A stretch of DNA of 64,000 bases from Trichosphaerium sp. ATCC 40318. Taxonomy: Eukaryota > Protista > Tubulinea. The notes below the pieces were generated by a model that saw only the letters and a list, made by a program, of their open reading frames with translations, ran no database searches and was not told the DNA's origin. The stretch is taken from the NCBI GenBank assembly GCA_038496445.1, contig JALMLS010000322.1, positions 434,001 to 498,000 of the forward strand. The letters run 5' to 3'. This document shows, in pieces, positions 3,402-51,482 of the stretch (within the stretch, counting starts at the first letter, position 1; each line of letters starts with the position of its first letter). A program made the translations under genes and the position numbers.

Positions 3402-4743
3402 AAAAATCACGTTAAACAAATGAACATAGAAGTAGAACTTGCGCTGACTGTCTCGCAGAAACATTTTGTAAGTCTAAGTTGGCCTATCAAGCTATATATT
3501 AATCCTTTGTATCGAATCATCCAAGTACTCAACATCTGGGGATTCTTGAGCCTTGATAAAACAAATACTAAACCGACAAAGGTTAAAGCGTTAAGTGAAT
3601 GCAAGATTTCACACCAGCAGCAGAAGATGCCAGTATCAAACAAAAAGACTGTATCCAAGTTTCTTGACCGATTGTTGGAATTTGCAACAATATTAGAGCG
3701 TACTTTTGACAATGACACTGCCTCAGTACTCAGTATAAAATAATACAAACAATAACTCGACTGATTGATTTAAACTAAAAAGGTATTCCTTATGCGTTTA
3801 AGTCATATTTGAACCATAATTTTACAGCACTTTCAGGACAACCACATCTCTTCTTCTAATTCTCAAAAAAGATGGCACTACAGGTTCAATCACTCCAACG
3901 AAGTATCAACATTACGCAAACAACCGTACGACACTGAGAGCGAACCAGTTTTTTAACAAAATTCTTTCAAAAAATCTATCAAAAAAATCAATCTTATTTT
4001 TATTTTAAGGCTTCAGGAACTAGTTCAGTGTTGACAAGAAGCAAATAAATCGTCTTTGACAAAGAAAGCACATTATCAAAGTCAGTTGGCCGGTGGCAGT
4101 AGAGCAATCTTTTTCAAGGCACGTCACTCTGTTTCATTAATGAGGCTTCAAATTATATGTTTGAGCGGAACCATGTGCTCGTCATGACCTAAAATGGGAT
4201 CCCGTATATCACCATGCGAGACTAGGTAGTATAAAACGCCTGGGTTTTGGCCATTGCTTAAATCTACATAATCCTGACTTAACTTTGTCTTTTGAACGTT
4301 TTCTAAAACTTAGGATTACACCGTTATTATCATTAGTATCGGTCCAAAGTTTTGGGTTTTAAACGTTTAAAAGTCATTGTTAATGAAGCGATGGTTAATG
4401 TTGTGCTCTAGGAACCAACGTTCCGTATTTTCTTGTTTTTTGTTATTAGAGTAGATTTGGTCGAAAGACCCTATTATCGCACAATGTGTTATTTATTTAC
4501 CCCCTATCTAGGAGCTCCAATGCATACATATGGACTAATATAAACGTCAACTTTATGCTCGACTACCAGTTACTAAACAAGTGTAATGACAATGCATTGA
4601 CATTAAAAAAAAGTTCCATTCAAATTGTTTCATTATTGATAACTATAAAGCGATTCTGCAGTCTAGTTGATATCCATGCTATTTATTACTATTTGTCTCT
4701 ATACCTCATAGTTTTTGGGATAATCCATTGTCGTTTAAAGTTT

Positions 4744-6391
4744 TTACATGCCGTTCATTATAATTTTGCCGATATTTTTGTTTGCTTCCATAAAGTCATG
4801 TGCGTCCTTTGCTTTGTTCCAATCAAATACCTTTGAGATAATAGGTTTGATAAGACCTTTTTCAAATAGAGGTATCAAGTTGTTATTGATGTCCTGAGTA
4901 AGCCTCACTTTGTAGTCCAAAGACCTGCAAGTTTGGTTAAAAAAAACACAGAAAATGAACACAAACTTTTTATTGTTACCTTGCTCTTAGTGTGGTGCCC
5001 TTAATAGTAAGTCTACGGCGAAGAATATTACCCTGTATAGTTTTTGGTTAGTTTTTCAACGTTATAAAGGCGTTAGTACGCACGATACTGACATCTTTAA
5101 CTTGAAAACCGCTTAAAAATCCAAGCAAAATAACTCGTCCTATTTGAAAAACAAAACGTCAATATACGAAAGACTTTCAGGTAATCTCACCTTCTAATGC
5201 TGCAGTATTGATGTTCGATTGGAAGTAACTAAAGAAATTGTGTTAGTACGCAGCTAACATAACAGCGCTGTAAAACTGTTACTTGGCGCCAACGAAGTCC
5301 AAAGTTAAGTTGGATCCTTTCTTTTCAGTTGCTGCTAGTACATCTTCCTCCCATGGACCAGTCTTGTAATTGAAGCCCTTTGTAGCACCTAATATGATTA
5401 TCTCATTAGTGTGGTAGCATAATAGTGTGGCGTACCTAGGGAGCAACAAAAGTCAATTTTCTCTTGGCTTCCACAAGTTACAAAAACTTTGGCGTCTTTA
5501 ACTACATTCTTTACTATCTGGGTAGCAGCAGTACCAACACCGCTAGCACCAGCATGTATAAGAACATTTTCAGAATCTTTGAGTTCGCCCAGCCATACCC
5601 ATAGAAATCTAAGCAATAAATTCGACTACTACTAAACGTACCAACGCTATGAAAAAAACATTAGAAAAATCAACAAAATGAAAGGGTGAATCCGCTTGGA
5701 TTACCAATACCAACAAGAAGTTAAAAAAAAATGGTAATTGCCATGTATGAATACCTTGATATGCCGTCATGAAGACCTCAGGGATAGCTGCTGCTTGCTC
5801 CTAAAATCACATTAGAATACATTTCTTAGCGGATCCAAAATCATCATCTTACAAAAGAGAAGTTGTCAGGAATCTTAATCGCCATACCAGCAGGTATTAC
5901 GCAATCTAAAAGAAGTGTCAACAAACAAATGACAACAGTGATAAATTACAGTCTCGTAACTATACAAATACACGTACACTCAGCGTAACCGCCACCAGCA
6001 AGAAGAGCCATAACTCTGTCTCCTTTTTTCCAGCTTGTAACGTTTGGACATACCTCCTCAACAATACCAGCCCTAATATACAGGTTAGTAATCTATTTGG
6101 AGTATTATCAGTACATTTCAAGGCCTATGATTGGAGAAGCGCCAGCAGGAGGTGGATATTTTCCCTTTCGCTGTAATACATCGGCACTAAACGATCAGAA
6201 TTGTTTTAGGACGTTTTTGTACCGATTTATTGCTGTAGCCTTTATTTTAACCAATAAGCTGTTTTTTTCCAACTTAGGCTTCTCAGTGTCACCAACATAC
6301 CTACAAAATAGTATTAAAAGAAAAAGATCGAAAGTTTTTCAGCTTACAAGTTTTCGCTGCCACCAAACTCTTTTAGAAGAACAGCTTTCAT
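4744..6391 (-). CDS. NAD(P)H:quinone oxidoreductase, zeta-crystallin/PIG3 (TP53I3)-like MDR family
   Basis: Exons read MKAVLLKEFGG..., ...QRKGKYPPPAGASPIIGLE..., ALLAGGGYAE, AAAIPEVFMTAYQ, VLIHAGASGVGTAATQ (nucleotide-binding), AHDFMEANKNIGKII*. Confidence 0.92.
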
Positions 6392-7016
6392 TGTAATAGT
6401 TTTTGTAGCGTAATATAAAAGTTAAGTAGGCGTTTTCCGTTCACGAATTCGTCCGTCAACGGAAATTAGCTTTCAAACAAATTCTGTAGATACAGGGGTT
6501 TTGTTGGCGGGACTACGGCTAAACTAGGTTACAGACAATTACAACCTACAAACGAGACATCACGGCGATCCGACCCTTTGTATTTTTATAGTCCCGGATC
6601 CAAGATTGCCTATTGGAGAAATTGTGCTTCTTGTCGCACGTGGGTACCATACAGATCCTACTTCAGTAACCTAAACGGTTTGCTGGTAGGATAAATTTGT
6701 AATCTAGCTGACACAGAATTATTTATTTACATTTGGTACTGTACGAGAAAACAAACCCCTTGTGAATTCTGTGCTGTTTTTACAAAATTGTCTCAATGTT
6801 AATGTGCTACGTTACGGTTGTTGCGTAGGAAATGCTGGTAAATTAAGTACGTGCCGGTTTGCAACGTCAAGACTACGAACTAGAAAAAATACTTTCCCTA
6901 TTGCCGGAAGTGTAAAATAAACTTTCACTTGGTTTGTAACAACTCAAACATGCCTACACCCCCACCCTCTGTAACACTCTCGTTTTATTAGAATGTACGA
7001 ACAGACCATCTATTAA

Positions 7017-7843
7017 TTACGCAAGCCAGTCCACCTTTAGATGCGTAGCTGCCGAGCGCCTGCGCCTATCCTTGAGACCTTTTTTGCAGCTAGCAACTAT
7101 AAAAAAACCAAGGCACTTGTCTTCATCCCCCATCCCGAGAAAGTCGCTCATCTCTGCTGAGTCACGTGCTCCACTATGCCATGAGCTCCAGTAGCACGCA
7201 AGACCGTCATATGCAGTAGTTTGCAAATGCATATTTTGAACAGCACAAGCTGTGGCTGCAGCCTCTTCCCATTCTTTCATTCGCTTTGATCCGGCTTGGC
7301 GCTGCATTACTATCCCTACCATATACGAAACAGGACCCCAACGTCCATCTATCTCTTCCTCTGTCATTTGTCGCCATTTCTGATACTCAGTCTCCGATCC
7401 CCAACGTTCGTAATCACTCCAATGCTGGTCGTAGAAGGCGAGCGTCATCCGTTGCATTTTGACCATGGCTTTTCGACCCAGTACAACAAAGCGCCATGGT
7501 GGTACAGGTCCGTGGTATGGAGCCCATATTGCAGCTTCTAGAATGCTTTGTAATACCTCTCGAGCTACTGGTTTGCGCACATAGTCTTTTGGAAATACTG
7601 ATTGCCTGTTTCGAATACAATCTAACAGAGTGCTGTTTTCTTGCTTTCGGTGTGCTTTGGCTGAGCGTTTGTAGATTTTGGTGCTTCATCGTTCCAAAAA
7701 GCGATCGCTTGAGCGACACAGGCTATTATAACAGTTCCCAAGTACAAGCCAGATGTTACTTTTTCGTATTGCGTTACAATGGTGATGGTAACAACTGCTA
7801 AAGCAAGTAGCACGCAAAATGTTGCGATTCTTTTTACTTGCAT
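7017..7843 (-). CDS. Nitroreductase-family protein with N-terminal membrane anchor; intronless; apparent -1 frameshift near 7630-7690
   Basis: LLDCIRNRQSVFPKDY...ILEAAIWAPYHGPVPPWRFVV...AAATACAVQNMHL...GLACYWSS are nitroreductase motifs. The upstream hydrophobic ORF 7622-7843 overlaps in another frame. Confidence 0.8.
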
Positions 7844-8097
7844 TTATTCTCACTTGCAAGGTTAACTACTGTTGAGTTGTCGTGCTCGTGATAATTGTGA
7901 TCGATTGAAAATATGGGGAAATTCAGTTGAATTAACTTTAATTTTATAAAAGTTGCCAGGGTTATTCTGCCAGGGTATTATAACGTTGGAGAATACTTTG
8001 TAAATTAAGCATTTGGTCCAACGGTGAATAATGACGTAGCTGGCGTGTAGTGGTTTATTTAGTCTAAACACGCCGCACCCGGTGATTAAAAACATGC

Positions 8098-10875
8098 ATG
8101 GCTAAAACACTTGCCAGACATTCAAAATCGTTTGCGCCTACCGCCAGCGCACAGTCTAAAGAATCTGTAAGTGATTTCGCGTTTTTCGTTGCGTTTACAG
8201 TTACAAGGTCATTAAACCCCAACTTTGGCGCTCATTTGAGCGAACCAGGGACTTTATAAATAATGTACGCGTTTTTGACACCATATCGCTACGAATACCT
8301 AAATTTATGCTAACAGCGATACATACAGGCAGGTACAGAGTTTAAACTAAAAACACTTGATTGTTGGTACAATGTCAACCCCACATCACTACTACCGATT
8401 CGTGGCGGTCCCTTGTTACAGTACATCCATTTCAGTTTTTTGTTTTTGATTGCGTGCAGGCGATACGATTATTCTCTTTGCAAACTGTTATCATACGTGT
8501 ACCCACAACACAACTGGCGTGAAGCTTTGTTCAGTACGGTTAAAAGTACCTCTCCTCTAAGTAACCTACTATAGCAAAGTTTTACAGGCACAAAGTAAAT
8601 AGTATTAGTCCTTTGACAGCATTGGCTTTCCAAGTACGAACCATAAAAATGTGACGAATTGTAGTAAAACTGTTTGTTTCTGAACCCTCTTCTTGCGTAA
8701 CTTATTATTTGATAGGCTGAAGAGGCTCATAATATTGTTGAGACAACACAGTGGTTAGATTACACCATTAGAGACTTGTATAAGCTCGGTGGTAGACCAT
8801 TGCTAAAAGGTAAAAGAATAAAAAACTTGCAACAGTTTTTGGAACGTGTTTATCCTGAAGTATCTTGGCATCATTGGCAGTTTGGTACGTTATAAAAAGA
8901 TGTGTATATATTATACCTGTATTCACATATATAAATAGGAGTTGTTCCACAGCAATTTTGGCTGAAAAGACCTGCGCATCATGCTGTTTTTAAAGATGTA
9001 CGTCAAACCAAAATTTAGTTGTTTTTCACTAAACAAAGTCGTATGCTCTAGCTTGAAGACTACCTTGGTGTTATAAAATTACAAGATTGGTATGATGTTA
9101 CTTACGAAGATGTTAATAAATTTTCTACAAAGATACTTCAGTACGCAAGAGTAAAAAGAGACAAGTCTTAACGCATCAATAGCCGATTTCACAGATCTGT
9201 TCCAGAAATGGTACAATATTTCTACCCAGAATATAAATGGCAGCAATGGAAATTCTGTGAGTCGTTAAGTATACATGCACTTCATTCTAATTATAACTAC
9301 GAAAGCGAAGGTATCTAGAGCATTTTGGGCCAAGCGAAAAAATATAGAACGATTCATTATGGAGGTAACTTATATTTAATTTGGATTGAAGCTCATACAA
9401 CTACTGTAGATTGAAGAGCTTTACGACTTGATACATCTTGACGATTGGTACGAAGTTGCTACATCACAAATATATTCAAATGGTGGAGCATCACTCATGT
9501 CAATGTACGCTACTTTTTTACCTTTGTGATTATTCTACAAACACTTCTTCTTTTTTGCTTCTACGTGTCCATTCGTTTCTTTCAATGTGGTAGCGCCCCT
9601 GAAATAATCAATATTTTGGTTAATTTGGTTACAGCCAAAACGTACCAGTTGTCCTAATTCAGACAAATAAGAATATTTTAAGAATGTCATCATTTTGACA
9701 CATTGCATTTTAGGTATTTTGAAGGGTCGGTTGTTGCTCTGGTCAAGTTTGTATACCCTGACAAAAAATGGGACGAGTGGCGCTTTCGTATGTTACAACA
9801 AACATATTACCTTCACTCACAACTACTTATAGAAAAGTCGCCGCACAACACGTGGAAGAACTTGGATAATCAACGAGCATTTATGATCGAAGTAAGAATT
9901 TGTTTCTAAAAACCAGCCATTACTTAATACGTTATTTAAGGCAGGGAAAAAACTAATTGTAAAGCGGCCAGAAGACTGGTATAATATACAGTTGAAAGAT
10001 TTGATCGATATAGGTGGTGCTTCTGTGATTAGGTACGATATAACATTAATATTACGCTACTCAAAAAAAAACTAGGCAGTATGGGAACTCGTTGCAACAA
10101 ACTTTACGTTCTGTTTTTCCACAATATGTGTGGGAAGCATGGAAGTTTGGTATGTCATTTCCATTAATCAATAATAAAGCTTGCTTATTATAAACAGGTA
10201 AGATGCCTGCAGAAGAGTGGAACAATAATGATACTGTAGTAGAGTTTTTCAGAGGTGTACGTAAATCTTAAAGACGTTGTTCTAATATACATAGCTTGAA
10301 AATCATTATAATATACAGCACCGCGATGAATGGTATAAACGTACTCTAAGGGACATATCCTCTCAAGGTGGTAGTGGTCTCGTATACAAGTACATCTAAA
10401 AAATAATGTCATTTACTCATTCCTGTTTCAGGTTTCAGAACCAAGGAATTCATAAGTTACTTGCTCAAGTGTACCCAGACCACTCATGGAAACCTTGGCG
10501 CTTCTGTAAGACATAAATTCTTAGATAAGAGAACTGACATGACCTCTTTAGATAAAAGTTTTCACCCTGACGGCTGGAGAGATAGGGAACACGTTTCCTC
10601 GTTTATTCAAACAGCTGAATCAGCTTTACGCATAAACGCGCCAACTGACTGGCAGAGGATATCTGAGATTCAACTATTAGATGCAATTGATGCTAGAGGA
10701 TGGAGACCGTACCTACAATCTATGTTATCTTTGGTATATCCGGGTCTAAATAGGGTAACAAAGAAAAGTGGCGACAGAAGAGCATCTCAAAGGTTTGTAT
10801 TTTTTTTTGTTATTGGTTGGTTTATTTTTAATGCTTAGATCTCTCATAATATGCGCCAATGACTTATTCTTGTGA
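8098..10875 (+). CDS. W-rich ~70-aa repeat protein (about 7 repeats), no nuclease domain
   Basis: Spliced translation repeats the pattern PxxxW-(helix)-DWYxV-x-GGxxL-x-Y/F-x-S-x-V/FYP-x-W-x-WxF. It ends ...GDRRASQRSLIICANDLFL* at TGA 10873-10875. About 18 short introns. Confidence 0.75.
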
Positions 10876-11729
10876 TACAACGCTGCTACTACCCGTTTGT
10901 TAGGCAAATATCCATGTAAAGTATTGTAAATAACTAAAAAACAACATTTCCAAATAAAAGTTTGTAAATTGCGTATGCTTGACTGGTTGGGCGTTGTAGA
11001 AGCTGAATTCGCGTTCATAAAAAACAAACAAGTTCACTTCAAGCTAATATTTGTAAAGGTATTTACAACGCTTGCACCTCCGGTAAAGACACTTCTAAGA
11101 CAGCTTCCCTGGATTTCTAGCACAAAACCATAGTTCTAAAAATACCTCACTAAACACAAAAGCTGTTAAAACCTCATGGAGCACGCTGTGGTGGAATATT
11201 ACAGGTTCCACAATTTTTTCACAGCAGAAAGTTAAGGTTCAAAAGCACATAGATTTTCTCCATTAATGGTTGGTTCGAATTGTGTCTACGCTTGGGTTAC
11301 GGCTCTGTCCAGGCTGATACTCCTGTGTGCTACTATGGTGTATTTGTTCATGCTTTAACGGTAGGCAGCAATGCCTTCTGTTACGGGACTGCACTATGTT
11401 CACAGGTGCCTTTGCGGGCTAAGGTTTGAGATTACTGCGTATCGATACTGTTCTGGCTTGCCTTTTTTGTTTATTTTGCATGTAGGGCACGAATGATGTC
11501 ATTGTTATTATACCTGCTACTCAACTCCAAAAAACATACAACCCTCATTGCAAGTTAGATTGTTTTCAGCTTTTTTGCCTCTCGCTCACAACGCTCCTGA
11601 AAGGCGTACAAATAGTCGAACTTGGCTCTACTAAGCATGTAAAGCCCATACAGAAGGAAACGATTAAGTGGGAGTTGACTGTCAAATGTCCATCACATTC
11701 TGTTAATGTAACTAACCTGTTCAAAACCA

Positions 11730-13971
11730 TTGTTTGCCAAAATAAGGGGTGTAGCACGTACTGGGAGCGCCGTTGATTACAATAGTTCTTTAAATAGCCA
11801 ACGGCGCTCGTTTGAGGCTATTGCCGAAAAACTTCGAGTTCATGACGTTACTGGGCTATATAATGTGACAAGCGATGATATTAAGCACCATGGAGGCTAT
11901 AGTGTTATGTCATTGTATGTAACATAAACGAATCGCTCTAATTAGTACTAGACACGGTAATTCTATATCTAATTGCGTACAAGAGCTATATCCCAAGCAT
12001 AAATGGAATAGTTGGCAATTTATGTACGTAAACAACAACTGATGATTTCTTACTACCAATCAGTAAGACGCCCAAAGGGTTTAACGACACAATACAAAAC
12101 CAGCAGTACAAACTCAACTCAGTTTCCCAATCCATTGGTATAAAGACTCTATGCGAATGGTATGGCGTAACACAACACGTCTTGCAGCGTTATGATGGTG
12201 GCGGTATTTTATCACTCTACAACGGCTCCATTTCCAGTTGTATGGAATCAGTGTACCCACAATACGCGTGGGAGCTCCAAAAATTCAAGTACGTTAACAA
12301 CTCAGCTGCAAAATTTTGAAACGGCAGCCGTATCGCCTTTTCACATGCCCTATAAAAAGCCCTTTCCATTCTATATTTTGTCTCACAGGTTCATTGCGCA
12401 TTACAGGAACGTACCACAAGGGTATTGGAACGACAAGGAAAACCAAAAAAAGCTGTTTGATCAAATTGCACAAAATCTTGACATTAAAGACACAGAAGGG
12501 TGGTATAATACTTCTACTCACTGTGTAATATCTAAAGGAGGAGGTAGTGTATTAATACATCAGTACGTACAATCACGTGTTGTAGAAATACAATGAACAG
12601 TCAAGTTTTTTTTTTACAGTATACGAACAGTCAAAAGAAAACTAATTGAAAAAAAAGGTACAATGCGTCATTGTCAAGTTGTTTGCAATCAGTGTTTCCT
12701 GATAGAGCATGGAAATATTGGAAATTCAAGTATGGTTGTTTTAAACTATGCCTCTTATTTATTTGTGATACTCTTTAGGGGCTATCCTAGTACAAACATC
12801 TATGATGATAAAAAAATCCATAAAGATATTTTTGAGGAGTTGGCTAAAGAGCACAGAATTCTTCAATTAAATGGCTGGTATGATGTCGAAAAATTAACCT
12901 CTGATCCACATGTTACAATAGTAATCTCAAGGTACACACCAAAAATATATACGAACTCCACATTAACATGTACACATCATAGATACGGGTCGTTGGTTAA
13001 CACGTTAAAATTTTTATACGCAAAACACGAATGGGATATCACTAAGTTTGGATGGAAACACGAATTTTGGCGTCATGAAGAATACCGGTATAAGTTCTTA
13101 AGTAAAATAAAAAGCATATTGGCATTGATACACCGGACAAGTGGTACGATAGAGCGAGAAAAATTAACAAACAATTCTGTTAAAAATAACTTATGGAAAT
13201 TTTAAGGTACCAAGTTTGCTATAGAACACTTGGTTCTATGGGTGCTAATCACTTGATAAAGTATTGGCCAAGGGTACTAGAAAATATAGAACCGGATTAT
13301 GCGTGGGTTTGGGATAGATTTAAAGTAGGTTTTGGACGTAGAACAAAACAGCAGTATGGCTTGTTTATTTGCAATGTTCTTTTTTTTAACAAGTTTTACT
13401 AGACTTCTCGAAAGAGTACTTAGATCTATCTTCAAAGGCGCTACAATTGTAACAGAAGCACAAATAGACTTAAATACAAGTAACCAAGAAGGTATAACCG
13501 TTGATATTTTGCTACCAGAGTACAACTTGGCGGTTGAATACCAAGGTGCGTACACATTTTAACATTAAAAAACCAATTGCATCTGGATAGTACTCGTTTT
13601 AAAAGGACTTTAGGAGAACAACACTATGATGATGTGTTTAAATGGAGTCAATCTTCATCTACACAGCAAATACGGGATGCCGAAAAAATGCAACACTGCA
13701 GAGATTCAGGTTGGCTTAACGTTTGCTTACCAATTACAAACTTTGTTCAGGTATTTGTTTGGTACCAATCCCTTACTGGTGGGAAGGCGATATAGAATCA
13801 ATAGTAGCCACAATAAAGCACTACAAGCCATCTCTTCAAGTTTCAACGCTAATAAGAGCGAAACCCTTGATAACATTAAAAAATTCGTCCGAAAGTACGT
13901 TTTTTCGTAAACTCGTATCATTGTTAATAGAGTTAGGTTTGCTAATGGCGCCTAAACAAATGGTTGTATAG
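11730..13971 (+). CDS. W-rich repeat protein with C-terminal PD-(D/E)xK (DUF559/Vsr/RAP-like) nuclease-fold domain; start uncertain
   Basis: Repeats such as NVPQGYWNDKENQKKLFDQIAQNLDIKDTEGWYNTS...GGGSVL. C-terminus ITVDILLPEYNLAVEYQGEQHYDD...QIRDAEKMQHCRDSGICLVPIPYWW. Confidence 0.75.
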
Positions 13972-14022
13972 TTGCACGCTGGCGTTGCGGAACACTAAAA
14001 TTTTCCCTGCAATTAACGCGTT

Positions 14023-14094
14023 ATCCGCGTAGCTCAATGGTAGAGCGCTAGACTTCTAATCTAGAGGTTGTGGGTTCGATACCCATCGCGGATG
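14023..14094 (+). tRNA. tRNA-Arg(UCU), intronless
   Basis: ATCCGCG/CGCGGAT acceptor stem, GCTC/GAGC D-stem, CTAGA-CTTCTAA-TCTAG anticodon arm, GTGGG-TTCGATA-CCCAT T-arm. Confidence 0.95.
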
Positions 14095-14101
14095 AATGAT
14101 A

Positions 14102-14107
14102 TTTTTT
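14102..14107 (+). terminator. Pol III oligo-T terminator of tRNA-Arg
   Basis: T6 run 7 nt after the discriminator base. Confidence 0.7.
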
Positions 14108-14250
14108 GAAAGTCTCGGAATGCATGAAACACGAGAAAACGGCCGTTTCGTCGACCTCAACCTACTAGATGCTACTTTTTTGCATAGCAAACGTTTGTAA
14201 ATAAAAATTGACGCCAGTTTTATACAATAAGTTTATTTACAAGTTTTTGT

Positions 14251-15402
14251 TTAGATCAGTGCTTTAACGTGTTGCACCAGTATCCTGCCAATAGTTAGTT
14301 TTAGTTATCTTATATAATAATAGTAACATACCGCTGAGAACTGTTTTTTCGCTTCTTGCAAAGTTCTGTTCGGGACCAATCGTGAAAAGGATATAACAAC
14401 CTCAAACTAGGCAGGATTCTATTGAACAACCCGCTTCCACCAAGAGCTGCAAGCATGCCAGTTGATACTCTATACCAACCACTAGGTTGACTTATTTTAA
14501 CCTTATCCTCAACACCTTTGCAACAAGTCAGTGAGTAGGCCAGACAGTGATGTGACATTCTCCACACCTTTTAAAAATGACACAACATGTCCAGGTTCAT
14601 GCCAATGGCCATGTCGCCTTCTATGAGAACTGTGAGTTTTATATTCGTCTAGGCTAGTTTTACGTACACAGCGCCTTTCTTTTTAGATGTAAAGGTTTGG
14701 ATAGGGTACATTGAAGAAAGACACTGAGGGTATATTGATTTAAACCCGCCGCTAGCACCAACTTTCTTTTTTATTTGATAAAAAGAAATGCCTTTCCACC
14801 CATCCTTGTCGGTGATACCAAACGCTTTAGCTACATCTAATAGTTTATAAGCACGTACATTAAAGTGTGTGGAGTAAGTACGTTTTAAATAAGAGAAGAC
14901 AAACTTATCATTTTGCCAAAAGTTTCGAGGTACAACTCTACAAGTTTTGTGAGAGAAAATGTTGGGGTAAGTATCTCGGCTGTACTTGAATTGCCAGAGC
15001 TTCCATTTGTAATCTGGATAGGCAACACGCAAGAGAGTTGATAGAGAGTTAAACCTACGTCAACATTAACGAGGTGACAAAAGGCTGTAAACGCACTTTC
15101 TATTTACTAAATAGGACGCATTACCGCGTAGTTGGCGTTTACTGACGCCGTACCAATCATCTATCGTTTTTAAGTTGAGATTGGCTTCGACTTCTTGTAG
15201 AGCACTTCTTACGCGTTCTACATGTTCCCAATATCCCGCAGGATGTTTATTGGTGCTAACGGCTGGTATTAGATTGTATACATCAGGGACGCTAGCAGTA
15301 CGTTACTGTAGTGTCTTTAGCGCGTGAGGGATTGTTAGAACGTCGCGTAACGGAGTGAGAGCGTATTTTAATGAACCGGTTAGTTACAATCACACGCGCC
15401 AT
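14251..15402 (-). CDS. W-rich repeat protein (about 3 repeats) with Arg/Ser-rich N-terminus, no nuclease domain
   Basis: MARVIVTNRFIKIRSHSVTRRSNNPSR...HPAGYWEHVERVRSALQEVEANLNLKTIDDWYGVS...VAYPDYKWKLWQFKVVPRNFW...GWYRVS...GGSGLF...KRKNSSQRILVQHVKALI*. Confidence 0.72.
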
Positions 15403-17146: not shown

Positions 17147-17977
17147 TTAGCAATTCGTAACCGGTTCGGTTGTGGTGAAAAGAAATTTGTTGGCTATACT
17201 TGTAAATCCGGCCCATCTAGTAGTACTTACTTTTTTCCCATTAATATAATGGCGCTGTTGATGAAATTGACCATCAAGATACCATTCTTTGAACTCTCCT
17301 TCTTGTTTACCATTGACATAACAACCTTGTACTCTTAGCTGACCATTTTGATGCCATTTTTTGTACTCTCCCTCAATTTTACCATTGACGTAAAATAGGT
17401 GTACTTTTAATTGAGAATTAGCATGCCACTCTTTGTATTCTCCATGTATCTTCCCTTTGATATAATAACAATGCTCTCGTAAGTGACCATTTTTATGACA
17501 ACGCTTGTACTCTCCTTCTAGTTTTCCATTGATGTAGTTAGCCTCAAGTTGCATGGCACCATTTCTATGCCAAGTATTGTACACACCTTCAACTAAATTA
17601 TTGACATAATTTGAGCAAAGATACATTTGACCATTTGGATGCCACCTTGTGTATGCTCCTTCGAGTTTCCCATCTATATACTGACATTGAGAAAGTAAAT
17701 CGCCTTTATCATTCCAGTACACTATATGCTGGCCATGAAGTTTACTGTGCTTCCAGTTAGCTGTACACCGCACCTGATATTTCCAAGTATCTGGATCTAC
17801 TTTACCTTTTACCCATTTCCCATGTTTTTTCAAATCAAAGTCAAATCTCGTTGTCGATGATGCATATTTAGATAAAACGGGCCATTTCTGATATACTTCG
17901 TAGTTTAAATCAATAATAATGAACTGTATTTCTAAAGGAAGAATGTTCAAGATGTTGGCATGATTTGAAGTGCTCAT
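17147..17977 (-). CDS. MORN-variant (YwqK-like) repeat protein with F-box-like N-terminus, intronless
   Basis: About 7 tandem 24-aa repeats (YxNGKxEGEYKxWHxNGQL); N-terminal LNILPLEIQFIII. Confidence 0.85.
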   Translation of the reverse strand: MSTSNHANILNILPLEIQFIIIDLNYEVYQKWPVLSKYASSTTRFDFDLKKHGKWVKGKVDPDTWKYQVRCTANWKHSKLHGQHIVYWNDKGDLLSQCQYIDGKLEGAYTRWHPNGQMYLCSNYVNNLVEGVYNTWHRNGAMQLEANYINGKLEGEYKRCHKNGHLREHCYYIKGKIHGEYKEWHANSQLKVHLFYVNGKIEGEYKKWHQNGQLRVQGCYVNGKQEGEFKEWYLDGQFHQQRHYINGKKVSTTRWAGFTSIANKFLFTTTEPVTNC

Positions 17978-22051: not shown

Positions 22052-25000
22052 ATGGCGAATAGGAAGCGTCCTTTCGCTGTTCACGACGACACCGCCGAAC
22101 GGCCTAACAAAGTAGCGCGAACCGGTGATCAGGTACACACAGCGCGCATTAGCCACTATTAACGTATTTCAGTCTTCTGTTCGTTCTAGCACCCGCCTTC
22201 AAATTAAGAGGCACAACCCACCTGTCGCTCAATTACGCGAGGCTGCTGTCAGTCAGCTCCAAGATAGTCTGTGCAATAAACTTGTCAAACATGAAGAGGC
22301 TGTCAGAGAACTTGCTTTTTTAAAGGTACCAACAGCACAAATAGCGCAAAGGAGCTCATATTTTGCAGGGTGGCGGCCAATTACAAGATTATAAGATGAA
22401 TGACCCCAAGCTGAATGCCTCCGTGTCGCAATACCATGCTGCACATTCTCTACGCCCAACGCGTGGTGGCGCAGCGTCAGAACCGGTTAAAGTTGCTTCT
22501 TCATTTGCGGCATCAGCCCGCACCACAAACGCAGTGCCTATGGCAGCTGCACGTCAAACCGTACGCAATTAGCGTATTTTTATACGTTAAATTTACTTTC
22601 TACATTAGGCGCCGATGGCAGCTTCTGTACCCATCACAAACATTCCACCAGAGTTTCCAGTGGCTGTTGCCACTCCTATGGCACAATCTGAACTAGATCC
22701 ATTAGTAGCGCAAAGTGCTGTACCTTCCGTGAGCGCTCTGCCAATGTCTCCTGCTCATTTGTCCGCACAACAACGTTCCAGCCAACGTGCACAGCGTATG
22801 GAGGCACGTAATGCTCGCGCTCCGCCACCTGTGGTAGTACAGCGGCCTACCAAAACTACTGTTGTGCTCAAAAAGGAGCCTATTGTGGCTCCCAGAACAG
22901 AGAAAAAACCACTTGTACCAGTACGTTAAATTTACATTTTTTATTTCCATTACAATGACGCTTATACTCTTTAGCCTCCACGTCCAACGAGCTTCGTGCA
23001 ACCAGCCGCTAAAGCGCCAAATTTTTATAGACCTTTTGTCGAAACACAACTACATGAGATCAAAGGCAAGTGGAACGATGTACCAGATCCATGCGCTATT
23101 CCAGGCGTTGTAGAGAAAGCTAAAAAAGTAAGTATCAAATAATTGTTTTAAAAACGAGTAGTTTACTAAAACGTTTCAACATAGGATGCTGCTATTAAAA
23201 ATCGGGTTGAACAGCTCATTAGTCAAGGACTTTGGTCCTCTCGTGCGCCTTCAAAATGCCCTGAGCCTGTGCGTGTTGATGTGCATTGGGATAAGCTACT
23301 CAAAGGTACAGTACTGGCGTGATACTTTTTGTACTAATGCATGTATGTAGAGATGAAATTAGTTGCTGAGGATTTCAAAGGAGAGCGTGTCTATAAGAGA
23401 CATAGACAACAAGAACTAAGTAAGTCTATCTACCGACGTTTTAGAATACGAGAAAGAGATCGCATACGTAAAACGAAGGAGAAGCAAACATTGATGAAGC
23501 GAAGGTAAAGGAGAACATCTCATTTGGTTTTTTTTTTGTCAAAAAATGTTTTGACTTGCAAGGGACTGATACTAAACTATAATTCTAGGGCCAAGTGGAT
23601 ATCACAACGTGTCCGTGAGTTTTGGGGTGAAATTGAGAAGGTTGGCGAAAAGCGAATTATGCGTAATGTAAAGAGGAAGGAGGATGAAGCTAAAGTGAAG
23701 CATCTTGATTTTCTTGTTGATCAAACGTCTATTTATTCAAAGAACATCAAAAAAGACATGGAACAGCGTGGCATTGCGCCAAATGGTAAAGCTCCTCATA
23801 GTGATATGCGTACTAACTTACAATAGCGCCAAAAGAGCCTAAAGAGACTAAAGAGGCAAAAGAGGTTGCGGTTAAGAAAGAGGCAAAAGAGGTTGCAGTT
23901 AAGAAGGAACCAAGCGCTGCAGATGCCATGGATGTTGATGAACCTAAAGCAGCTGTAGCTGCGTCTACTGAAAATACTGCAGAGTTGGATAATTCTAAAA
24001 TTATGGCTGTTGCAAATGAAGCTAGACACTTCAAGCCTACTGGTAATAACTCTTTTTTTGGTTTTTCTTTTTTCGGGTAAAGGGGTTTTTTTCTAACTTT
24101 TGCTTTTCTAGCAAGCACTTTGTCTGAACAACAAGTTCAAACCAAGGTACCTGATTGTATGCAAGCAACGCTCAGAGAGTATCAAATTATTGGATTGGAT
24201 TGGTTGGTTACAATGCACAAGAAGAACTTGAATGGTACGATGTTCGTTTTCTGTTTTTTTTTTTTTGTTGAAATGAGTGAAACGTCGGCTTTACTCATAA
24301 ATCCAAAGGTATCCTTGCTGATGAGATGGGTCTCGGTAAAACAATCCAAACAATATCTTTATTAGCACATCTAGCTATTGAGGAAGGTATATGGGGACCA
24401 CACTTGATTGTAGTACCTACAAGCGTTCTTCTTAATTGGGATATGGAAATTAAAAAGTTTTGTCCTATATTCAAGATTCTAGCTTATTATGGGACTCCAA
24501 AGCAACGTAAAGAGAAGAGAAAAGGGTGGCAGAAAGAAGATGCCTTTCATGTATGTTTAACGTCTTATAAGCTTATTACACAAGATGCTACGTTGTTTAA
24601 ACGTAAAAAATGGCAGTACTTGATCTTAGATGAAGCACAACATATTAAGAACTTTAAATCACAACGATGGCAGCTATTGTTAAACTTCAACACACAACAT
24701 CGTCTTTTGTTAACAGGTACACTACGCGCTCGATAATTTTTTTTTCATGTTGAAAAAACCTCGTTCTTTTTGGCTTATTTTGATCTTTGTTATTAGGTAC
24801 ACCTCTACAAAATGATTTGACAGAACTTTGGTCGTTATTGCATTTCCTGATGAGGGATGTTTTTTCTTCTATTTCTGAGTTTAAAGACTGGTTCTCTAAT
24901 CCTGTTAATGGCATGATAGAGGTGCGCATGAGATCTTTCCTTTATGATGTCTAAAGACTATTTGATACTAGGGATCACGATCTTTTAATGCTGAGTTGAT

Positions 25001-47222: not shown

Positions 47223-50200
47223 ATGTCTCAGCTTATATTGCTCTATTTTAGTGCCTTGTTTATTCTCTCCGCGTTTGCTGTCCGTATAGACACTTTTGAC
47301 GTGTTTTCAGAAGCCTCTACAAACTCCCCAACTCCAGTTGTCGTAACCACTATCAATGATACAATCTTTGGTGGAAGGCGTGATATGACAGCTTTGAGAC
47401 TGTTTGGCGATATTAGCGCTTTGGAACTATCATGTAGTGTAGTTAATGGTCTCTTTGCCATGAACACTGATGTGTCAGTCGTTGGCACGTGTTCTGTCGC
47501 CTATGCTGGAATATCTGGCGCTGGGTTTACGACACCTTTAAACTTACTTCAAAATGGTTGCAGTACGTATTACTTCATAACCTACCAACGTTTTTATTTT
47601 CTCTTAAAACTCGTTTTAGGTTGTTGGAACTTTCACGTTTTGGAATCAGACAACGATGTCGAATTAGTTGCAACTTTCCGTAATTCTATTACAAACCAAA
47701 GTATCGCTCTATTCCACACATTGGCACTTGATATCACCAATCCTACGGATGTTTGTATTCCATACGGAAGTGCTCAAAATGCATTGACATCAGTCAATAG
47801 AGCCGAATACACCTTAGCAAGTGTAACAGCTAATGTTGACATTGTTAGTAGCTATTCTTGTTGCCAACCAATTGTTTCTTGTTGGTACTATCTTCACTCT
47901 TTTCTAAGCGTTTCAATATTAACACGTGATATTTAGGCATACTATCACAGCTAGGCCACAAAGAGAGCTTAACTATTTGAATATTGGGGATGACATAGAT
48001 ATTTCGTTGACTTGTATCAATTACCCATCATTTCCAGCTACAGAAGAATCAATTGTTGGTTTGTTGCCTTTTGATGCTTCAGTTGGATCAGTACAAATAA
48101 GAAGTATTGCTTGTATAGGTGTAATATCGTTCGGTGTGATAAACAATGGGCTTACATTTACCGCACTACTTGGCGAAAACCAAACAGCCAGTTGCTCTCT
48201 TACCATAACAATGCAATCACCAGGTCAAGTCAACAACCTAGGCGCCTATATCACTACTGGAGCTCAAGAGAATCCTCCAATTCGTTCCAATGAAGGTGTT
48301 CCACTGTACGTTCCCTAATTTTCACAAGATTTCACCTATTGAAAAATCTAAACTGTTTTATTGATTTTATTCGACGCTGTTCTTAAGATTTAATATACCA
48401 CATAGCCATGGCACTCCAGCTTTCTGTGATCCACCTAAATTGTCATCGGTCATTGTCCTTGCTCCTCCTCAAATACCAACGAATGCGCCTTTCCCACCAC
48501 CAACAGAGCCACCAACAAACGCTCCAGTATTTGTCTCCTCTCCAACGAATGCACCATTTCCTCCACCAACAGAACCACCAACGAATGCACCAGTATTTGT
48601 CTCATCGCCAACAAACGCTCCATTCCCACCTCCAACAAAGCCACCAACAAACGCTCCAGTACCAAACGCACCAGTTTCCCCACCAACGTTTGTACCTATT
48701 ATAGACCCTTTTGAAGTGTTTGGATCATCTGATGCCTCATCAACAACACCTAATACAACAAGCGTTCTGGACAACACTATTTTTGGTGGGCGACGTGATA
48801 TCACAGCTGCTAAAACCGTTGTCAGTAATCCTCTTTTAGAGCTATCATGCAATGTGCAGGCGGGATTCTTTTCCATTAATGCCGATGTATCAGTGGTAGG
48901 TAAGTGCACTCTTACCTATGCTGGACCAGATGGAACTGGGTTCCCAATGCCACTGACCTTACTTCAAAATGGATGCAGTATGTAGAACCTTATGTAGGTT
49001 CTTTTCTTTACCTTCTGTTTCAGGTTGTTGGAACTTTCACGTTTTTGAAGCAGACAGCAATGTTAACATATCGGCAACTTTCCGCAATTCAATTACAAGC
49101 CAAAATGTCATCCTCTTGCATATATTGGAGGTTGATATCAGTTCTCCTATTGACGTTTGTATCCCGTACTCAACTCAAGCAGATGGATTGGCATCCATTG
49201 ATCGTGCCGAATACTCCACAGAAGCCTCTGTAGCTAATGTTGACCTGAGCATTGGCCATGCTTGCTGTCAACCAATCGTTTCTTGTTGGTACTACCCTTA
49301 ACCCTTTTGTAACCATTCAATGTTAACACGTGATATTTCAGGCATACCATCACTGCCGAAGGAGGGAAAGATTTAAATAATTTGGCTGTTGGTGACTCCA
49401 TCGACGTTTTGGTGACATGTAGAAATTACCTATCACTTCCAGCTACAACAGAGGAGATTGTTGTATTTTTCCCTTTTGATCTTTCAATTGGTTCAATGCA
49501 AGCAGGAACTGTGAGTTGTACAGGCCCAATAGTGACTCAATGCAGTGTCGTGGTGAATGTACTACGACTAAATGCAGTACTTGGAGAAGACCAAGTTGCA
49601 ACTGCCTCCGTCAGAATAACAATGCAATCACCAGGTCAAGTCAATAACCTAGGCGCCTTTATCACTACCGCAGCTGAAGAAGAACCTCCAATTCGCTCCA
49701 ATGAAGGTGTTCCACTGTACGTTCCTCTTTTTTTTGTACTTATTATAATAGTCACGTGACTTATACCTATATAGCCAAGGCACACCAGCTTTTTGTGATG
49801 CACCAAACCTCTCATCACTCACAGTTCTTGACCCTCAAGCACCTACAAACGCACCAATAGCTCTTCCACCAACTAATGCTCCGTTTGCACCTCCAACAGA
49901 ACCTCCAACAAATGCTCCAGTATTTGTAGCAACACCAACAAATGCACCAGTTCCACCACCAACAGAACCACCTACAAACGCTCCAGTATTTGTAGCAACA
50001 CCAACAAATGCACCAGTTCCTCCTCCAACAGAACCACCTACAAATGCTCCTGTACAAACAATGGCACCAACAAATGCACCACTACCATTTTCTCCAACAA
50101 ACGCGCCAGTTCCTCCACCAACAGAGCCACCAACGAACGCACCATTCCCGTCACCAACAAATGCACCAACAAATGCGCCAGTTCAGACGTTACCTCCAAC

Positions 50201-51409: not shown

Positions 51410-51482
51410 AGGGTGCTCCGGGAATCGAACCCGGGTCCTGGCGCACTGCAACCGCCTGCGATTCCGTCTTCGCCAAACACCC
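51410..51482 (-). tRNA. tRNA-Cys(GCA) with G31:G39 mismatch
   Basis: Minus strand reads GGGTGTT-TG-GCGA-AGACGGAA-TCGC-A-GGCGG-TTGCAGT-GCGCC-AGGAC-CCGGG-TTCGATT-CCCGG-AGCACCC-T. U73 discriminator is typical of Cys. Confidence 0.85.

Follow-up and report, generated by a model that had tools for sequence, protein, structure and literature searches.

In an intron-rich protist, three genes that lie side by side encode members of one protein family, built as arrays of tryptophan-rich modules, and one of the three carries a nuclease domain behind its array. Genes 1–3 are 22–28% identical to one another and are old paralogues of one large nuclear-encoded family. The explanation we prefer, and hold tentatively, is that the family consists of mitochondrion-targeted, array-guided nucleases, with DNA a more likely substrate than RNA, accompanied by binding-only paralogues. 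It builds on observed gene structures and splicing, an observed point of truncation, and the folds, size and fusions of the family; targeting, substrate and mechanism are inferred.

The genes lie in a tandem cluster of spliced nuclear genes, with ordinary genes and a tRNA on its flanks. When a profile of the repeat unit was run against the window (the whole 64-kb stretch of DNA analysed), every predicted exon of genes 1–3 was matched and almost nothing else, single-exon matches being as good as E 4e-25. A search with the repeat and nuclease profiles found no further family members within the window, and Pfam gave no match to its single exons, including the nuclease exons of gene 2, over which the domain is split by introns. 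Gene models were derived from RNA contigs, loose ends and splice consensus, and the exon joins were corrected by hand using the periodicity of the repeat. By profile on the spliced proteins, genes 1, 2 and 3 contain seven, four plus a partial, and three units, respectively, which agrees with a preliminary description in which all three were made of repeat units.

Gene 1 (8098..10875, forward strand) comprises 20 exons and encodes 570 residues, arranged as a 23-residue basic leader, seven units and a 12-residue tail, with no nuclease domain. The protein is strongly basic (net charge +19), and the exon pattern is periodic (59 / 89–95 / 74 nt). RNA contigs or loose ends back introns 9505–9713, 9788–9832 and 9892–9940 and also the final six; the 5′ third (8098–9504) was modelled from splice consensus and repeat periodicity only. 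The terminal phase-2 intron (10793–10838), whose RNA joint was present in both runs, is followed by a last exon (10839–10875) that encodes SLIICANDLFL and then a stop, and the RNA contig runs on unspliced to at least 10957 as 3′ UTR.

Gene 3 (15402–14251, reverse strand) is smaller, with eight exons and 274 residues, and likewise has no nuclease domain. An Arg-rich leader precedes three units and the tail ILVQHVKALI, and the net charge of the protein is +33. A single 912-nt RNA contig (X2) spans the whole CDS with all seven introns, and an in-frame stop lies directly upstream of the ATG. The terminal phase-2 intron (14285–14331, reverse strand) is seen in this contig, with the stop coming after ILVQHVKALI.

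Genes 1 and 3 both stop about 10 residues past a phase-2 intron that they have in common with gene 2. The preliminary description had placed an intron at the equivalent spot in both genes, with an early stop behind it, and RNA contigs contain both introns; its predicted splicing is borne out by RNA throughout gene 3 and, in gene 1, from 9505 onward. A search of the window with the family profile found no remnant of the nuclease domain downstream of either gene. Their N-termini, noted earlier as basic and poor in acids, are indeed so: no acidic residue appears before residue 22 of gene 1 or residue 30 of gene 3.

Gene 2, on the forward strand, is the nuclease form. Its repeat part (11686..13353) has four full units and a damaged last unit, and its start is uncertain: ATG 11686 combined with an intron at 11702–11754 is the only one-intron solution and is a guess. 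This start comes without a leader, and no presequence-bearing one-intron start was found. Upstream of 13225, over the 5′ two-thirds of the gene, there is no RNA coverage. Between 13046 and 13224 the reading frame is lost for the a and b parts of the last unit: it changes from frame 2 to frame 1 at an A-run (13105–13114), and a TAA stands at 13181. A GT..AG intron restores the frame only as 13088–13224 or 13046–13224, and either one removes the DWY helix of the last unit. An RNA contig (X1) ends exactly at 13225, right behind the AG at 13223–13224. The break is either an assembly indel, a true frameshift, or a stretch removed as an intron ending at 13224.

Behind the array, a linker helix and a PD-(D/E)xK domain (13403..13972) are encoded by exons 13403–13545, 13614–13709, 13751–13896 and 13939–13972. 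Introns 13546–13613 and 13710–13750 appear as GT..AG joints in the RNA contig, intron 13897–13938 has loose-end support, and intron 13354–13402 was inferred from contig position. The earlier proposal that gene 2 runs from KQQ into LLERVLRSIF and the nuclease motifs thus holds, with RNA joints at two introns. The family nuclease profile matches the three main nuclease exons at E 1.6e-9, 6e-7 and 1.6e-8, and the protein keeps the conserved D, E-Y-Q-G, H, D..K and PYWW (in VDILLP, AVEYQG-EQHY, RDAEK and IPYWW). On these motifs, gene 2 is predicted to be the catalytic form at this locus, provided that splicing bypasses the damaged last unit or that the damage is an assembly error. Because no presequence is visible in gene 2, its 5′ part is unsupported and its frame is broken, the only catalytic-type member of the locus may be defective.

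The repeat unit, of about 75 residues, is predicted to fold as a five-helix module. Models were made for the homologue P0076 and for one contiguous unit of gene 2, standing in for genes 1–3. The window's own unit reached a pLDDT of 92.5, and P0076, which shows five-helix units followed by an alpha/beta nuclease, 91.9. The helices are 14–15, 6, 6, 5–6 and 8 residues long, and the conserved Trp, Pro and Phe lie mostly in non-helical junctions between modules. An OPR/HPR/PPR-type hairpin (35–40 residues, two antiparallel helices) was considered and rejected on both length and helix number; the architecture had earlier been likened to that of FASTK, OPR and HPR proteins, and for the repeat unit that likeness is withdrawn. 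A fold search of the unit against solved structures returned nothing significant (Foldseek E above 4; best Z 3.7, for small SAM-like or TetR-type bundles), and profiles of the unit and of the nuclease found nothing meaningful among the sequences of solved structures. Weak resemblances, all far below significance, were to SAM, Slx4-CCD, Rad51-N, RNAP alpha-CTD and TetR-type bundles.

The unit is remotely related to Pfam DUF4046 (PF13255), and the structural kinship is clear: AFDB and ESM clusters named DUF4046 gave structural matches with E values of 3e-8 to 6e-7, TM reaching 0.62. At the sequence level, the best unit (P0238) scored 21.7 bits against a cut-off of 22.8; three of the 72 units matched at E up to 1, and the window unit gave no match. 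The "separate" repeat family of the preliminary description is thus real, very large, uncharacterised and modular, but its kinship to DUF4046 and the naming of some members as RAP proteins qualify the adjective. We found no paper describing the family and none on DUF4046/PF13255; DUF2726, which enters below, was found in surveys only, and both are names without known function. Among 668 aligned units, which share only about 30% identity, variability is spread over some 30 surface positions. Because TALE-like hypervariable positions were not found among them, the recognition code suggested earlier is so far without support.

Judged on the predicted structure, the nuclease is a member of the Vsr/DUF559/DUF2726/RAP fold group, and its structure resembles RAP and Vsr equally well. 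Over about 105 residues, Z is 10.4 to the RAP-type C-terminal domain of a T. gondii mitoribosomal protein (9i05_Xr) and 9.4 to that of FASTKD4 (9gek); the corresponding values are 9.9 for Vsr, 9.8 for I-Bth0305I (3r3p) and 9.2 for the Neisseria gonorrhoeae endonuclease-like protein 3hrl. Vsr, DUF559 and DUF2726 were grouped together by Steczkiewicz et al. 2012 (PMC3424549). The family shares with Vsr and DUF559 both the fold (Z 9.9 and 9.2) and a signature of the kind D ... E/D-x-x-G-x-x-H ... D-x-x-K/R. Across 57 nuclease domains, D35, E46, G49, H52, D71 and K74 are conserved at 90% or more, and gene 2 keeps all six. By spacing, the conserved Asp and His presumably align with the D51/H69 pair of Vsr. 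In the FASTKD4 study, Vsr D51 is described as paired with H69, and the His is replaced in the non-catalytic FASTKD4 (PMC11879112), whereas the present family keeps both Asp and His. Vsr itself is a single-domain bacterial enzyme with its own recognition of T:G mismatches; in the family, by contrast, a long repeat array stands before the domain.

In sequence, Pfam DUF2726 (PF10881) matches 35 of the 57 domains at E up to 1, exceeding its curated cut-off of 24.7 in P0076 (26.9 bits) and P0058 (29.6 bits). For the exons of the window and for the majority of family members, scores stay below the curated thresholds of both DUF4046 and DUF2726. PHROG families labelled homing, HNH or intron-encoded nuclease match the domain with E down to 2e-27, and relatives among phage genes are 31–44% identical to it. 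Pfam RAP (PF08373) matched one domain of the 57, at E 0.12, and found no match in whole family proteins at E 0.01–0.1. By this measure the closest relatives of the nuclease appear to be DUF2726 and phage homing-endonuclease families, not Pfam RAP.

Clustered at 50% identity, the family forms at least 6,581 clusters, drawn mainly from Amoebozoa and Heterolobosea; relatives also occur in bacteria and viruses. Its arrays hold 3 to 24 five-helix units, and the proteins usually end in the Vsr-type nuclease. Genes 1 and 3 share Arg/Ser-rich, acid-free leaders with many full-length homologues, one of them a ligase fusion; the presequence-like N-termini first remarked on at this locus are therefore common across the family. 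Homologues of other organisms carry further enzymes. An ATP-dependent DNA ligase is fused in P0108, P0121, P0093, P0250 and P0224 and, weakly, in P0233; the ligase tails of P0224 and P0108, the two tested, match the NCBIfam LigE model NF006592 at E 1e-54 and 2e-46, respectively. The palm and fingers of PolX are fused in P0234. NCBIfam named these ligase tails only and returned nothing for the repeat or the nuclease.

According to our preferred explanation, a short basic leader would take the protein to the mitochondrion. The module array would lie along an extended nucleic acid, more probably DNA than RNA, and would position the C-terminal Vsr/DUF2726-type nuclease to nick or cut there. Vsr-initiated repair proceeds from a nick to the action of polymerase and ligase. 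Relatives with a LigE-type ligase or PolX behind the nuclease might, in a similar way, cut, fill and seal mitochondrial DNA, and genes 1 and 3 would be hard-wired to bind only, and so could mark sites, protect them or compete for them. We favour DNA over RNA processing because the nuclease is nearest in sequence to DUF2726 and to phage homing-endonuclease families, relatives that cut DNA or carry such an annotation, and because the recurrent fusion partners are a LigE-type ligase and PolX. The explanation also draws on the nearly invariant catalytic-type residues, on the strong positive charge of genes 1 and 3, and on the characterised homing endonuclease I-Bth0305I, in which an N-terminal binding region likewise precedes a C-terminal Vsr-like nuclease (PMC3239194). 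Against it, nucleic-acid binding by the repeat is a prediction, and the fold search gave the unit no significant structural relative. A stronger version, which we regard as improbable, makes the modules an unrecognised programmable DNA-recognition repeat, one per fixed step of the duplex. A multigene system encoded in the nucleus and targeted to mitochondria would use it in site-specific nickases, in ligases and in polymerases, so that mtDNA is cut, filled in and resealed at defined sites, with nuclease-less paralogues such as genes 1 and 3 as site protectors or recruiters.

A possible, though less probable, alternative is that these are organellar RNA factors in the manner of FASTK, OPR-RAP and HPR-RAP proteins, in which mitochondrial transcripts are read by the array and either cleaved or only held by the RAP-like domain, stabiliser or adaptor roles falling to genes 1 and 3. 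Eukaryotic organellar helical arrays that end in a RAP domain bind RNA, and this speaks against the reading of DNA. The known proteins and the family have in common a helical N-terminal region followed by a C-terminal Vsr-fold domain; both are nuclear-encoded and expanded in particular lineages, and the family is probably organellar as well. Lineage-specific expansion and presequence-like leaders also recall the PPR, OPR and HPR families. The best whole-chain structural matches, weak as they are, are T. gondii mitoribosomal proteins, FASTKD2/3/4 and Arabidopsis RAP; the two RAP-type domains cited above match the nuclease well, and public databases have auto-named some members "RAP domain-containing". 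In a published survey, Amoebozoa and Excavata were without RAP proteins (PMC8190603), a gap that the family could fill. However, its repeat unit is twice as long, with five helices in place of a hairpin, Pfam RAP leaves the domains essentially unmatched, and the fusion partners, LigE-type ligase and PolX, work on DNA. By sequence the nuclease stands closest to phage families of DNA endonucleases, and the same layout of repeat and nuclease occurs in bacteria (AFDB entry A0A3Q9FTI3, named DUF559). Of the organellar RNA-processing analogy drawn earlier, then, the Vsr/RAP-fold domain after a repeat array stands, but relatives and fusions point to DNA.

That the genes are selfish or defensive DNA endonucleases descended from homing-endonuclease genes and acting on nuclear or invading (viral) DNA rather than in organelles, their clusters reflecting rapid turnover and the truncated genes being decayed or antidote-like, seems unlikely to us. 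The phage "EDxHD" enzyme I-Bth0305I shares with the family the order of a modular N-terminal region, DNA-binding in that enzyme, and a C-terminal Vsr-like PD-(D/E)xK nuclease (PMC3239194), but its binding region consists of two NUMOD/HTH motifs and not of an array of ~75-residue five-helix units. EDxHD genes sit in phage introns or inteins, whereas the family's are spliced nuclear genes with presequence-like leaders; we rejected an EDxHD setting (self-splicing intron or intein, or free-standing in phage) for the present tandem cluster. The homing-endonuclease relatives of the nuclease, the tandem clusters here and at a second locus (L001), the damaged look of gene 2, and ESM Atlas family clusters labelled Nucleocytoviricota or Uroviricota all suit such an origin. 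Yet the best 80 viral loci have the nuclease domain alone, with repeats in none of them, leaders recur across taxa, splicing and expression persist in paralogues of old age, and truncation falls at a conserved intron and not at a random break. A protein–protein scaffold that combines SAM-like modules with a PD-(D/E)xK fold lacking catalysis, and that has no direct nucleic-acid role, is very improbable: SAM and Slx4-CCD, both protein-contact domains, are among the unit's weak best fold matches and Pfam gives sub-threshold matches to SAM_TNK, but those fold matches are all far below significance, residues of catalytic type hardly vary, the fused domains are DNA enzymes, and the charge of genes 1 and 3 is highly positive.

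If the array-guided nuclease explanation is true, Amoebozoa and Heterolobosea own a large family of array-guided mitochondrial enzymes, and the role of dozens of site-reading nucleases and ligases in the mitochondrial genome or transcriptome becomes testable, as does the use of the module as a designable nucleic-acid binder. The module has no solved relative and is coupled to enzymes of DNA-repair type, namely a Vsr-like nuclease, a LigE-type ligase and PolX. The nuclease-less paralogues at this locus are natural binding-only controls, and members without the nuclease, first noticed here, were found again in other organisms.

The preliminary description proposed a separate modular family with catalytic and binding-only members. 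The observation is confirmed and part of the interpretation holds: this is a real family, huge, modular and as yet unstudied, with predicted catalytic and binding-only members. Some of it is already listed in databases under empty names. The repeat-profile search suggested there, based on nine contiguous segments of repeat units from the window itself, retrieved 6,581 cluster representatives (50% identity) at E ≤1e-3 and 810 at E ≤1e-30. Named sources comprise the Amoebozoa Cavostelium, Nematostelium, Copromyxa, Echinamoeba and Physarum, a heterolobosean (BB2) and MMETSP transcriptomes. Searches by structure further brought in dictyostelids, planctomycetes, 'DUF4046' proteins of the Bacillus group and one full-length 'DUF559' protein from a bacterium, as well as clusters labelled Nucleocytoviricota and Uroviricota.

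The homologues carry 5–24 units among the 150 listed, and the C-terminal domain of gene 2 is present in 179 of the 253 fetched. The remaining ~29% have no nuclease; several end directly after the linker helix, as genes 1 and 3 do, and part of this group are surely truncated gene calls. Transcript isoforms of single Cavostelium genes differ in having a complete nuclease domain (P0255 vs P0013) or a DNA-ligase tail (P0250 vs P0017), a hint that other species use splicing to switch tail modules. Three adjacent intron-less members, with 4, 6 and 7 units and a nuclease in each, lie at 3528–9838 of a 1.5-Mb metagenomic contig (L001); thus, tandem clustering is not special to the Trichosphaerium genome.

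The unit has the consensus P-x3-W-x4-NQR-x-F ... L-x-I-x4-DWY-x-V ... GG-x2-LL-x2-Y-x2-S ... YPEH-x-W-x3-F. AlphaFold models (pLDDT 91.9 for the homologue P0076 and 92.5 for the window's own unit at 12065–12286) show five helices of 14–15, 6, 6, 5–6 and 8 residues, with the Trp/Pro/Phe-rich unit ends forming non-helical connectors. In these models the unit is no PPR, OPR or HPR hairpin; it is a new kind of module, unlike those of OPR or HPR proteins. Nor did a single unit significantly match any characterised fold in the PDB (Foldseek E >4): the best Z was 3.7, among TetR, Slx4-CCD, SAM, Rad51-N and RNAP alpha-CTD bundles and far below the tool's noise guide. A sequence profile of the unit found nothing among solved structures, and Pfam returned DUF4046 only, sub-threshold. 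The recognition code thought possible at first has no support so far: across 668 units nothing like a two-residue code was found and variability was spread over many surface positions.

RNA evidence consisted of spliced contigs from two public runs with ≥99% identity to the locus. For gene 3 (15402–14251, minus strand), it bears out the earlier splicing call in full: one 912-nt contig spans the CDS with all seven GT..AG introns. The product, 274 aa with three repeat units, is very basic (net charge +33), and an in-frame stop lies directly upstream of the ATG. For gene 1 (8098–10875, plus strand; modelled with 20 exons, 570 aa), RNA joints or loose ends back introns 9505–9713, 9788–9832 and 9892–9940 and the last six, while the 5' third was modelled from splice consensus and strict exon periodicity. 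From 8208 to 10505, every unit takes three exons (59, 89–95 and 74 nt; intron phases 0, 2 and 1), so the units were duplicated along with their introns; the phases in gene 3 differ slightly from this pattern.

Gene 2 (~11686–13972, plus strand) encodes four good units and a fifth that is damaged, followed by the nuclease. Its described run-on into the nuclease holds for the nuclease exons, where introns 13546–13613 and 13710–13750 are visible in RNA contigs, 13897–13938 is consistent with a loose end, and a contig on 13225–13353 that extends past 13353 is consistent with intron 13354–13402. The translation reads TKQQ / LLERVLRSIF, VDILLP, AVEYQG / EQHY, RDAEK and IPYWW. The stretch 13046–13224, however, cannot be read straight: the ancestral last unit is recognisable there, but reading it takes a +1 shift in the run of A at 13105–13114, and a TAA interrupts it at 13181. 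In-frame GT..AG splicing is otherwise possible only with intron 13088–13224 or intron 13046–13224; one RNA contig has its end precisely at 13225, which favours use of the acceptor at 13224. In the contigs of both runs, support begins at 13225, with none upstream. The sole simple start, ATG 11686 with intron 11702–11754, yields no leader peptide. A contig matching gene 2 (X1) differs from the genome (A in place of G) at 13255 and 13261, two sites 6 nt apart, which could be strain variation or editing.

The three proteins are 22–28% identical and thus old paralogues. As described earlier, genes 1 and 3 have an intron at the equivalent spot and then stop: gene 1 ends in ASQR / SLIICANDLFL, its transcript contig continuing unspliced to at least 10957, and gene 3 in SSQR, a phase-2 intron and ILVQHVKALI. 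The intron preceding the LLERV helix of gene 2 is likewise phase 2, as are both terminal introns, so this intron is common to all three genes. In genes 1 and 3 the reading frame closes some ten residues after the start of the helix that opens the nuclease domain in gene 2, and a search of the window found no nuclease-domain remnant downstream of either.

The P0076 nuclease model has the topology helix, three strands, helix, strand, helices. Over ~100 residues it matches the RAP-type C-terminal domain of a T. gondii mitoribosomal protein (Z 10.4), Vsr (9.9), the I-Bth0305I catalytic domain (9.8), FASTKD4 RAP (9.4) and the N. gonorrhoeae endonuclease-like protein 3hrl (9.2). The label 'RAP/DUF559-like' is therefore correct at fold level, but by sequence the nearest family is DUF2726, matching 35 of 57 nuclease domains, the best above the cut-off; the RAP profile matches one of the 57, at E 0.12. 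RAP-like RNA work, to which the two RAP structures would point, is a rather unlikely role. PHROG families labelled homing, HNH or intron-encoded nuclease match the domain with E down to 2e-27, phage genes are 31–44% identical to it, and more than 457 IMG/VR loci contain it, the repeats being absent in the best 80; a selfish or defence nuclease outside organelles, the reading these kinships invite, seems improbable beside the leaders described below. Six residues (D, E, G, H, D, K) are ≥90% conserved and all kept in gene 2, and a scaffold role unrelated to nucleic acid is hardly credible. The D51/H69 pair described in Vsr is lost in the non-catalytic FASTKD4 (PMC11879112), whereas the family appears to retain both residues at matching spacing, judging from an inferred alignment, not a superposition.

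In several independent representatives the nuclease is followed by an ATP-dependent DNA ligase. Pfam DNA_ligase_A_M is matched by P0108, P0121, P0093, P0250 (just below cut-off) and P0224, with a weak ligase trace only in P0233, and P0234 alone has a PolX palm and fingers. Kinetoplastid mitochondria rely on PolX and a related ligase for filling and sealing gaps in kDNA, which is an analogy only. In P0224 and P0108, the two checked against NCBIfam, the best model was LigE NF006592 (E 1e-54 and 2e-46, just below cut-off); eukaryotic LigE-type ligases are bona fide DNA-break sealers (PMC10665377). Indirectly, the nearest relatives, the conserved active site, the ligase and PolX tails and bacterial members of like layout favour DNA rather than RNA as substrate.

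The basic, acid-poor N-termini noted for genes 1 and 3 are indeed seen; in gene 3 the leader is Arg-rich and residue 30 is the first acidic one. Homologues with 20–50 residues before the first unit mostly start likewise, Arg/Ser/Ala-rich and acid-free. By composition, such presequence-like leaders are suggestive of targeting. We tentatively propose, at somewhat under even confidence, array-guided nicking directed at mitochondrial DNA.

The window is eukaryotic in sequence type, with GC ~37%. Introns in its coding sequence are 36–82 nt long, with a single exception of 209 nt, and have mostly GTAYGT donors and YAG acceptors. A tRNA-Arg(TCT) (14022–14095, plus strand) lies between the gene 2 stop (13972) and the point where the gene 3 transcript has its 3' end (≤14225); a tRNA-Cys(GCA) (51410–51482, minus strand) lies farther along. 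Other features are a nitroreductase-like ORF (7017–7580, minus strand), an intron-less MORN-repeat ORF (17147–17977, minus strand), a SNF2-type helicase exon (24326–24736, plus strand) and a Pro/Thr-rich tandem-repeat ORF (48440–48985, plus strand). Between genes 1 and 2, positions 11300–11333 of the spacer are 90–95% alike to a short piece of the RNA contig X2 whose flanks are unrelated on both sides, probably a dispersed short repeat.
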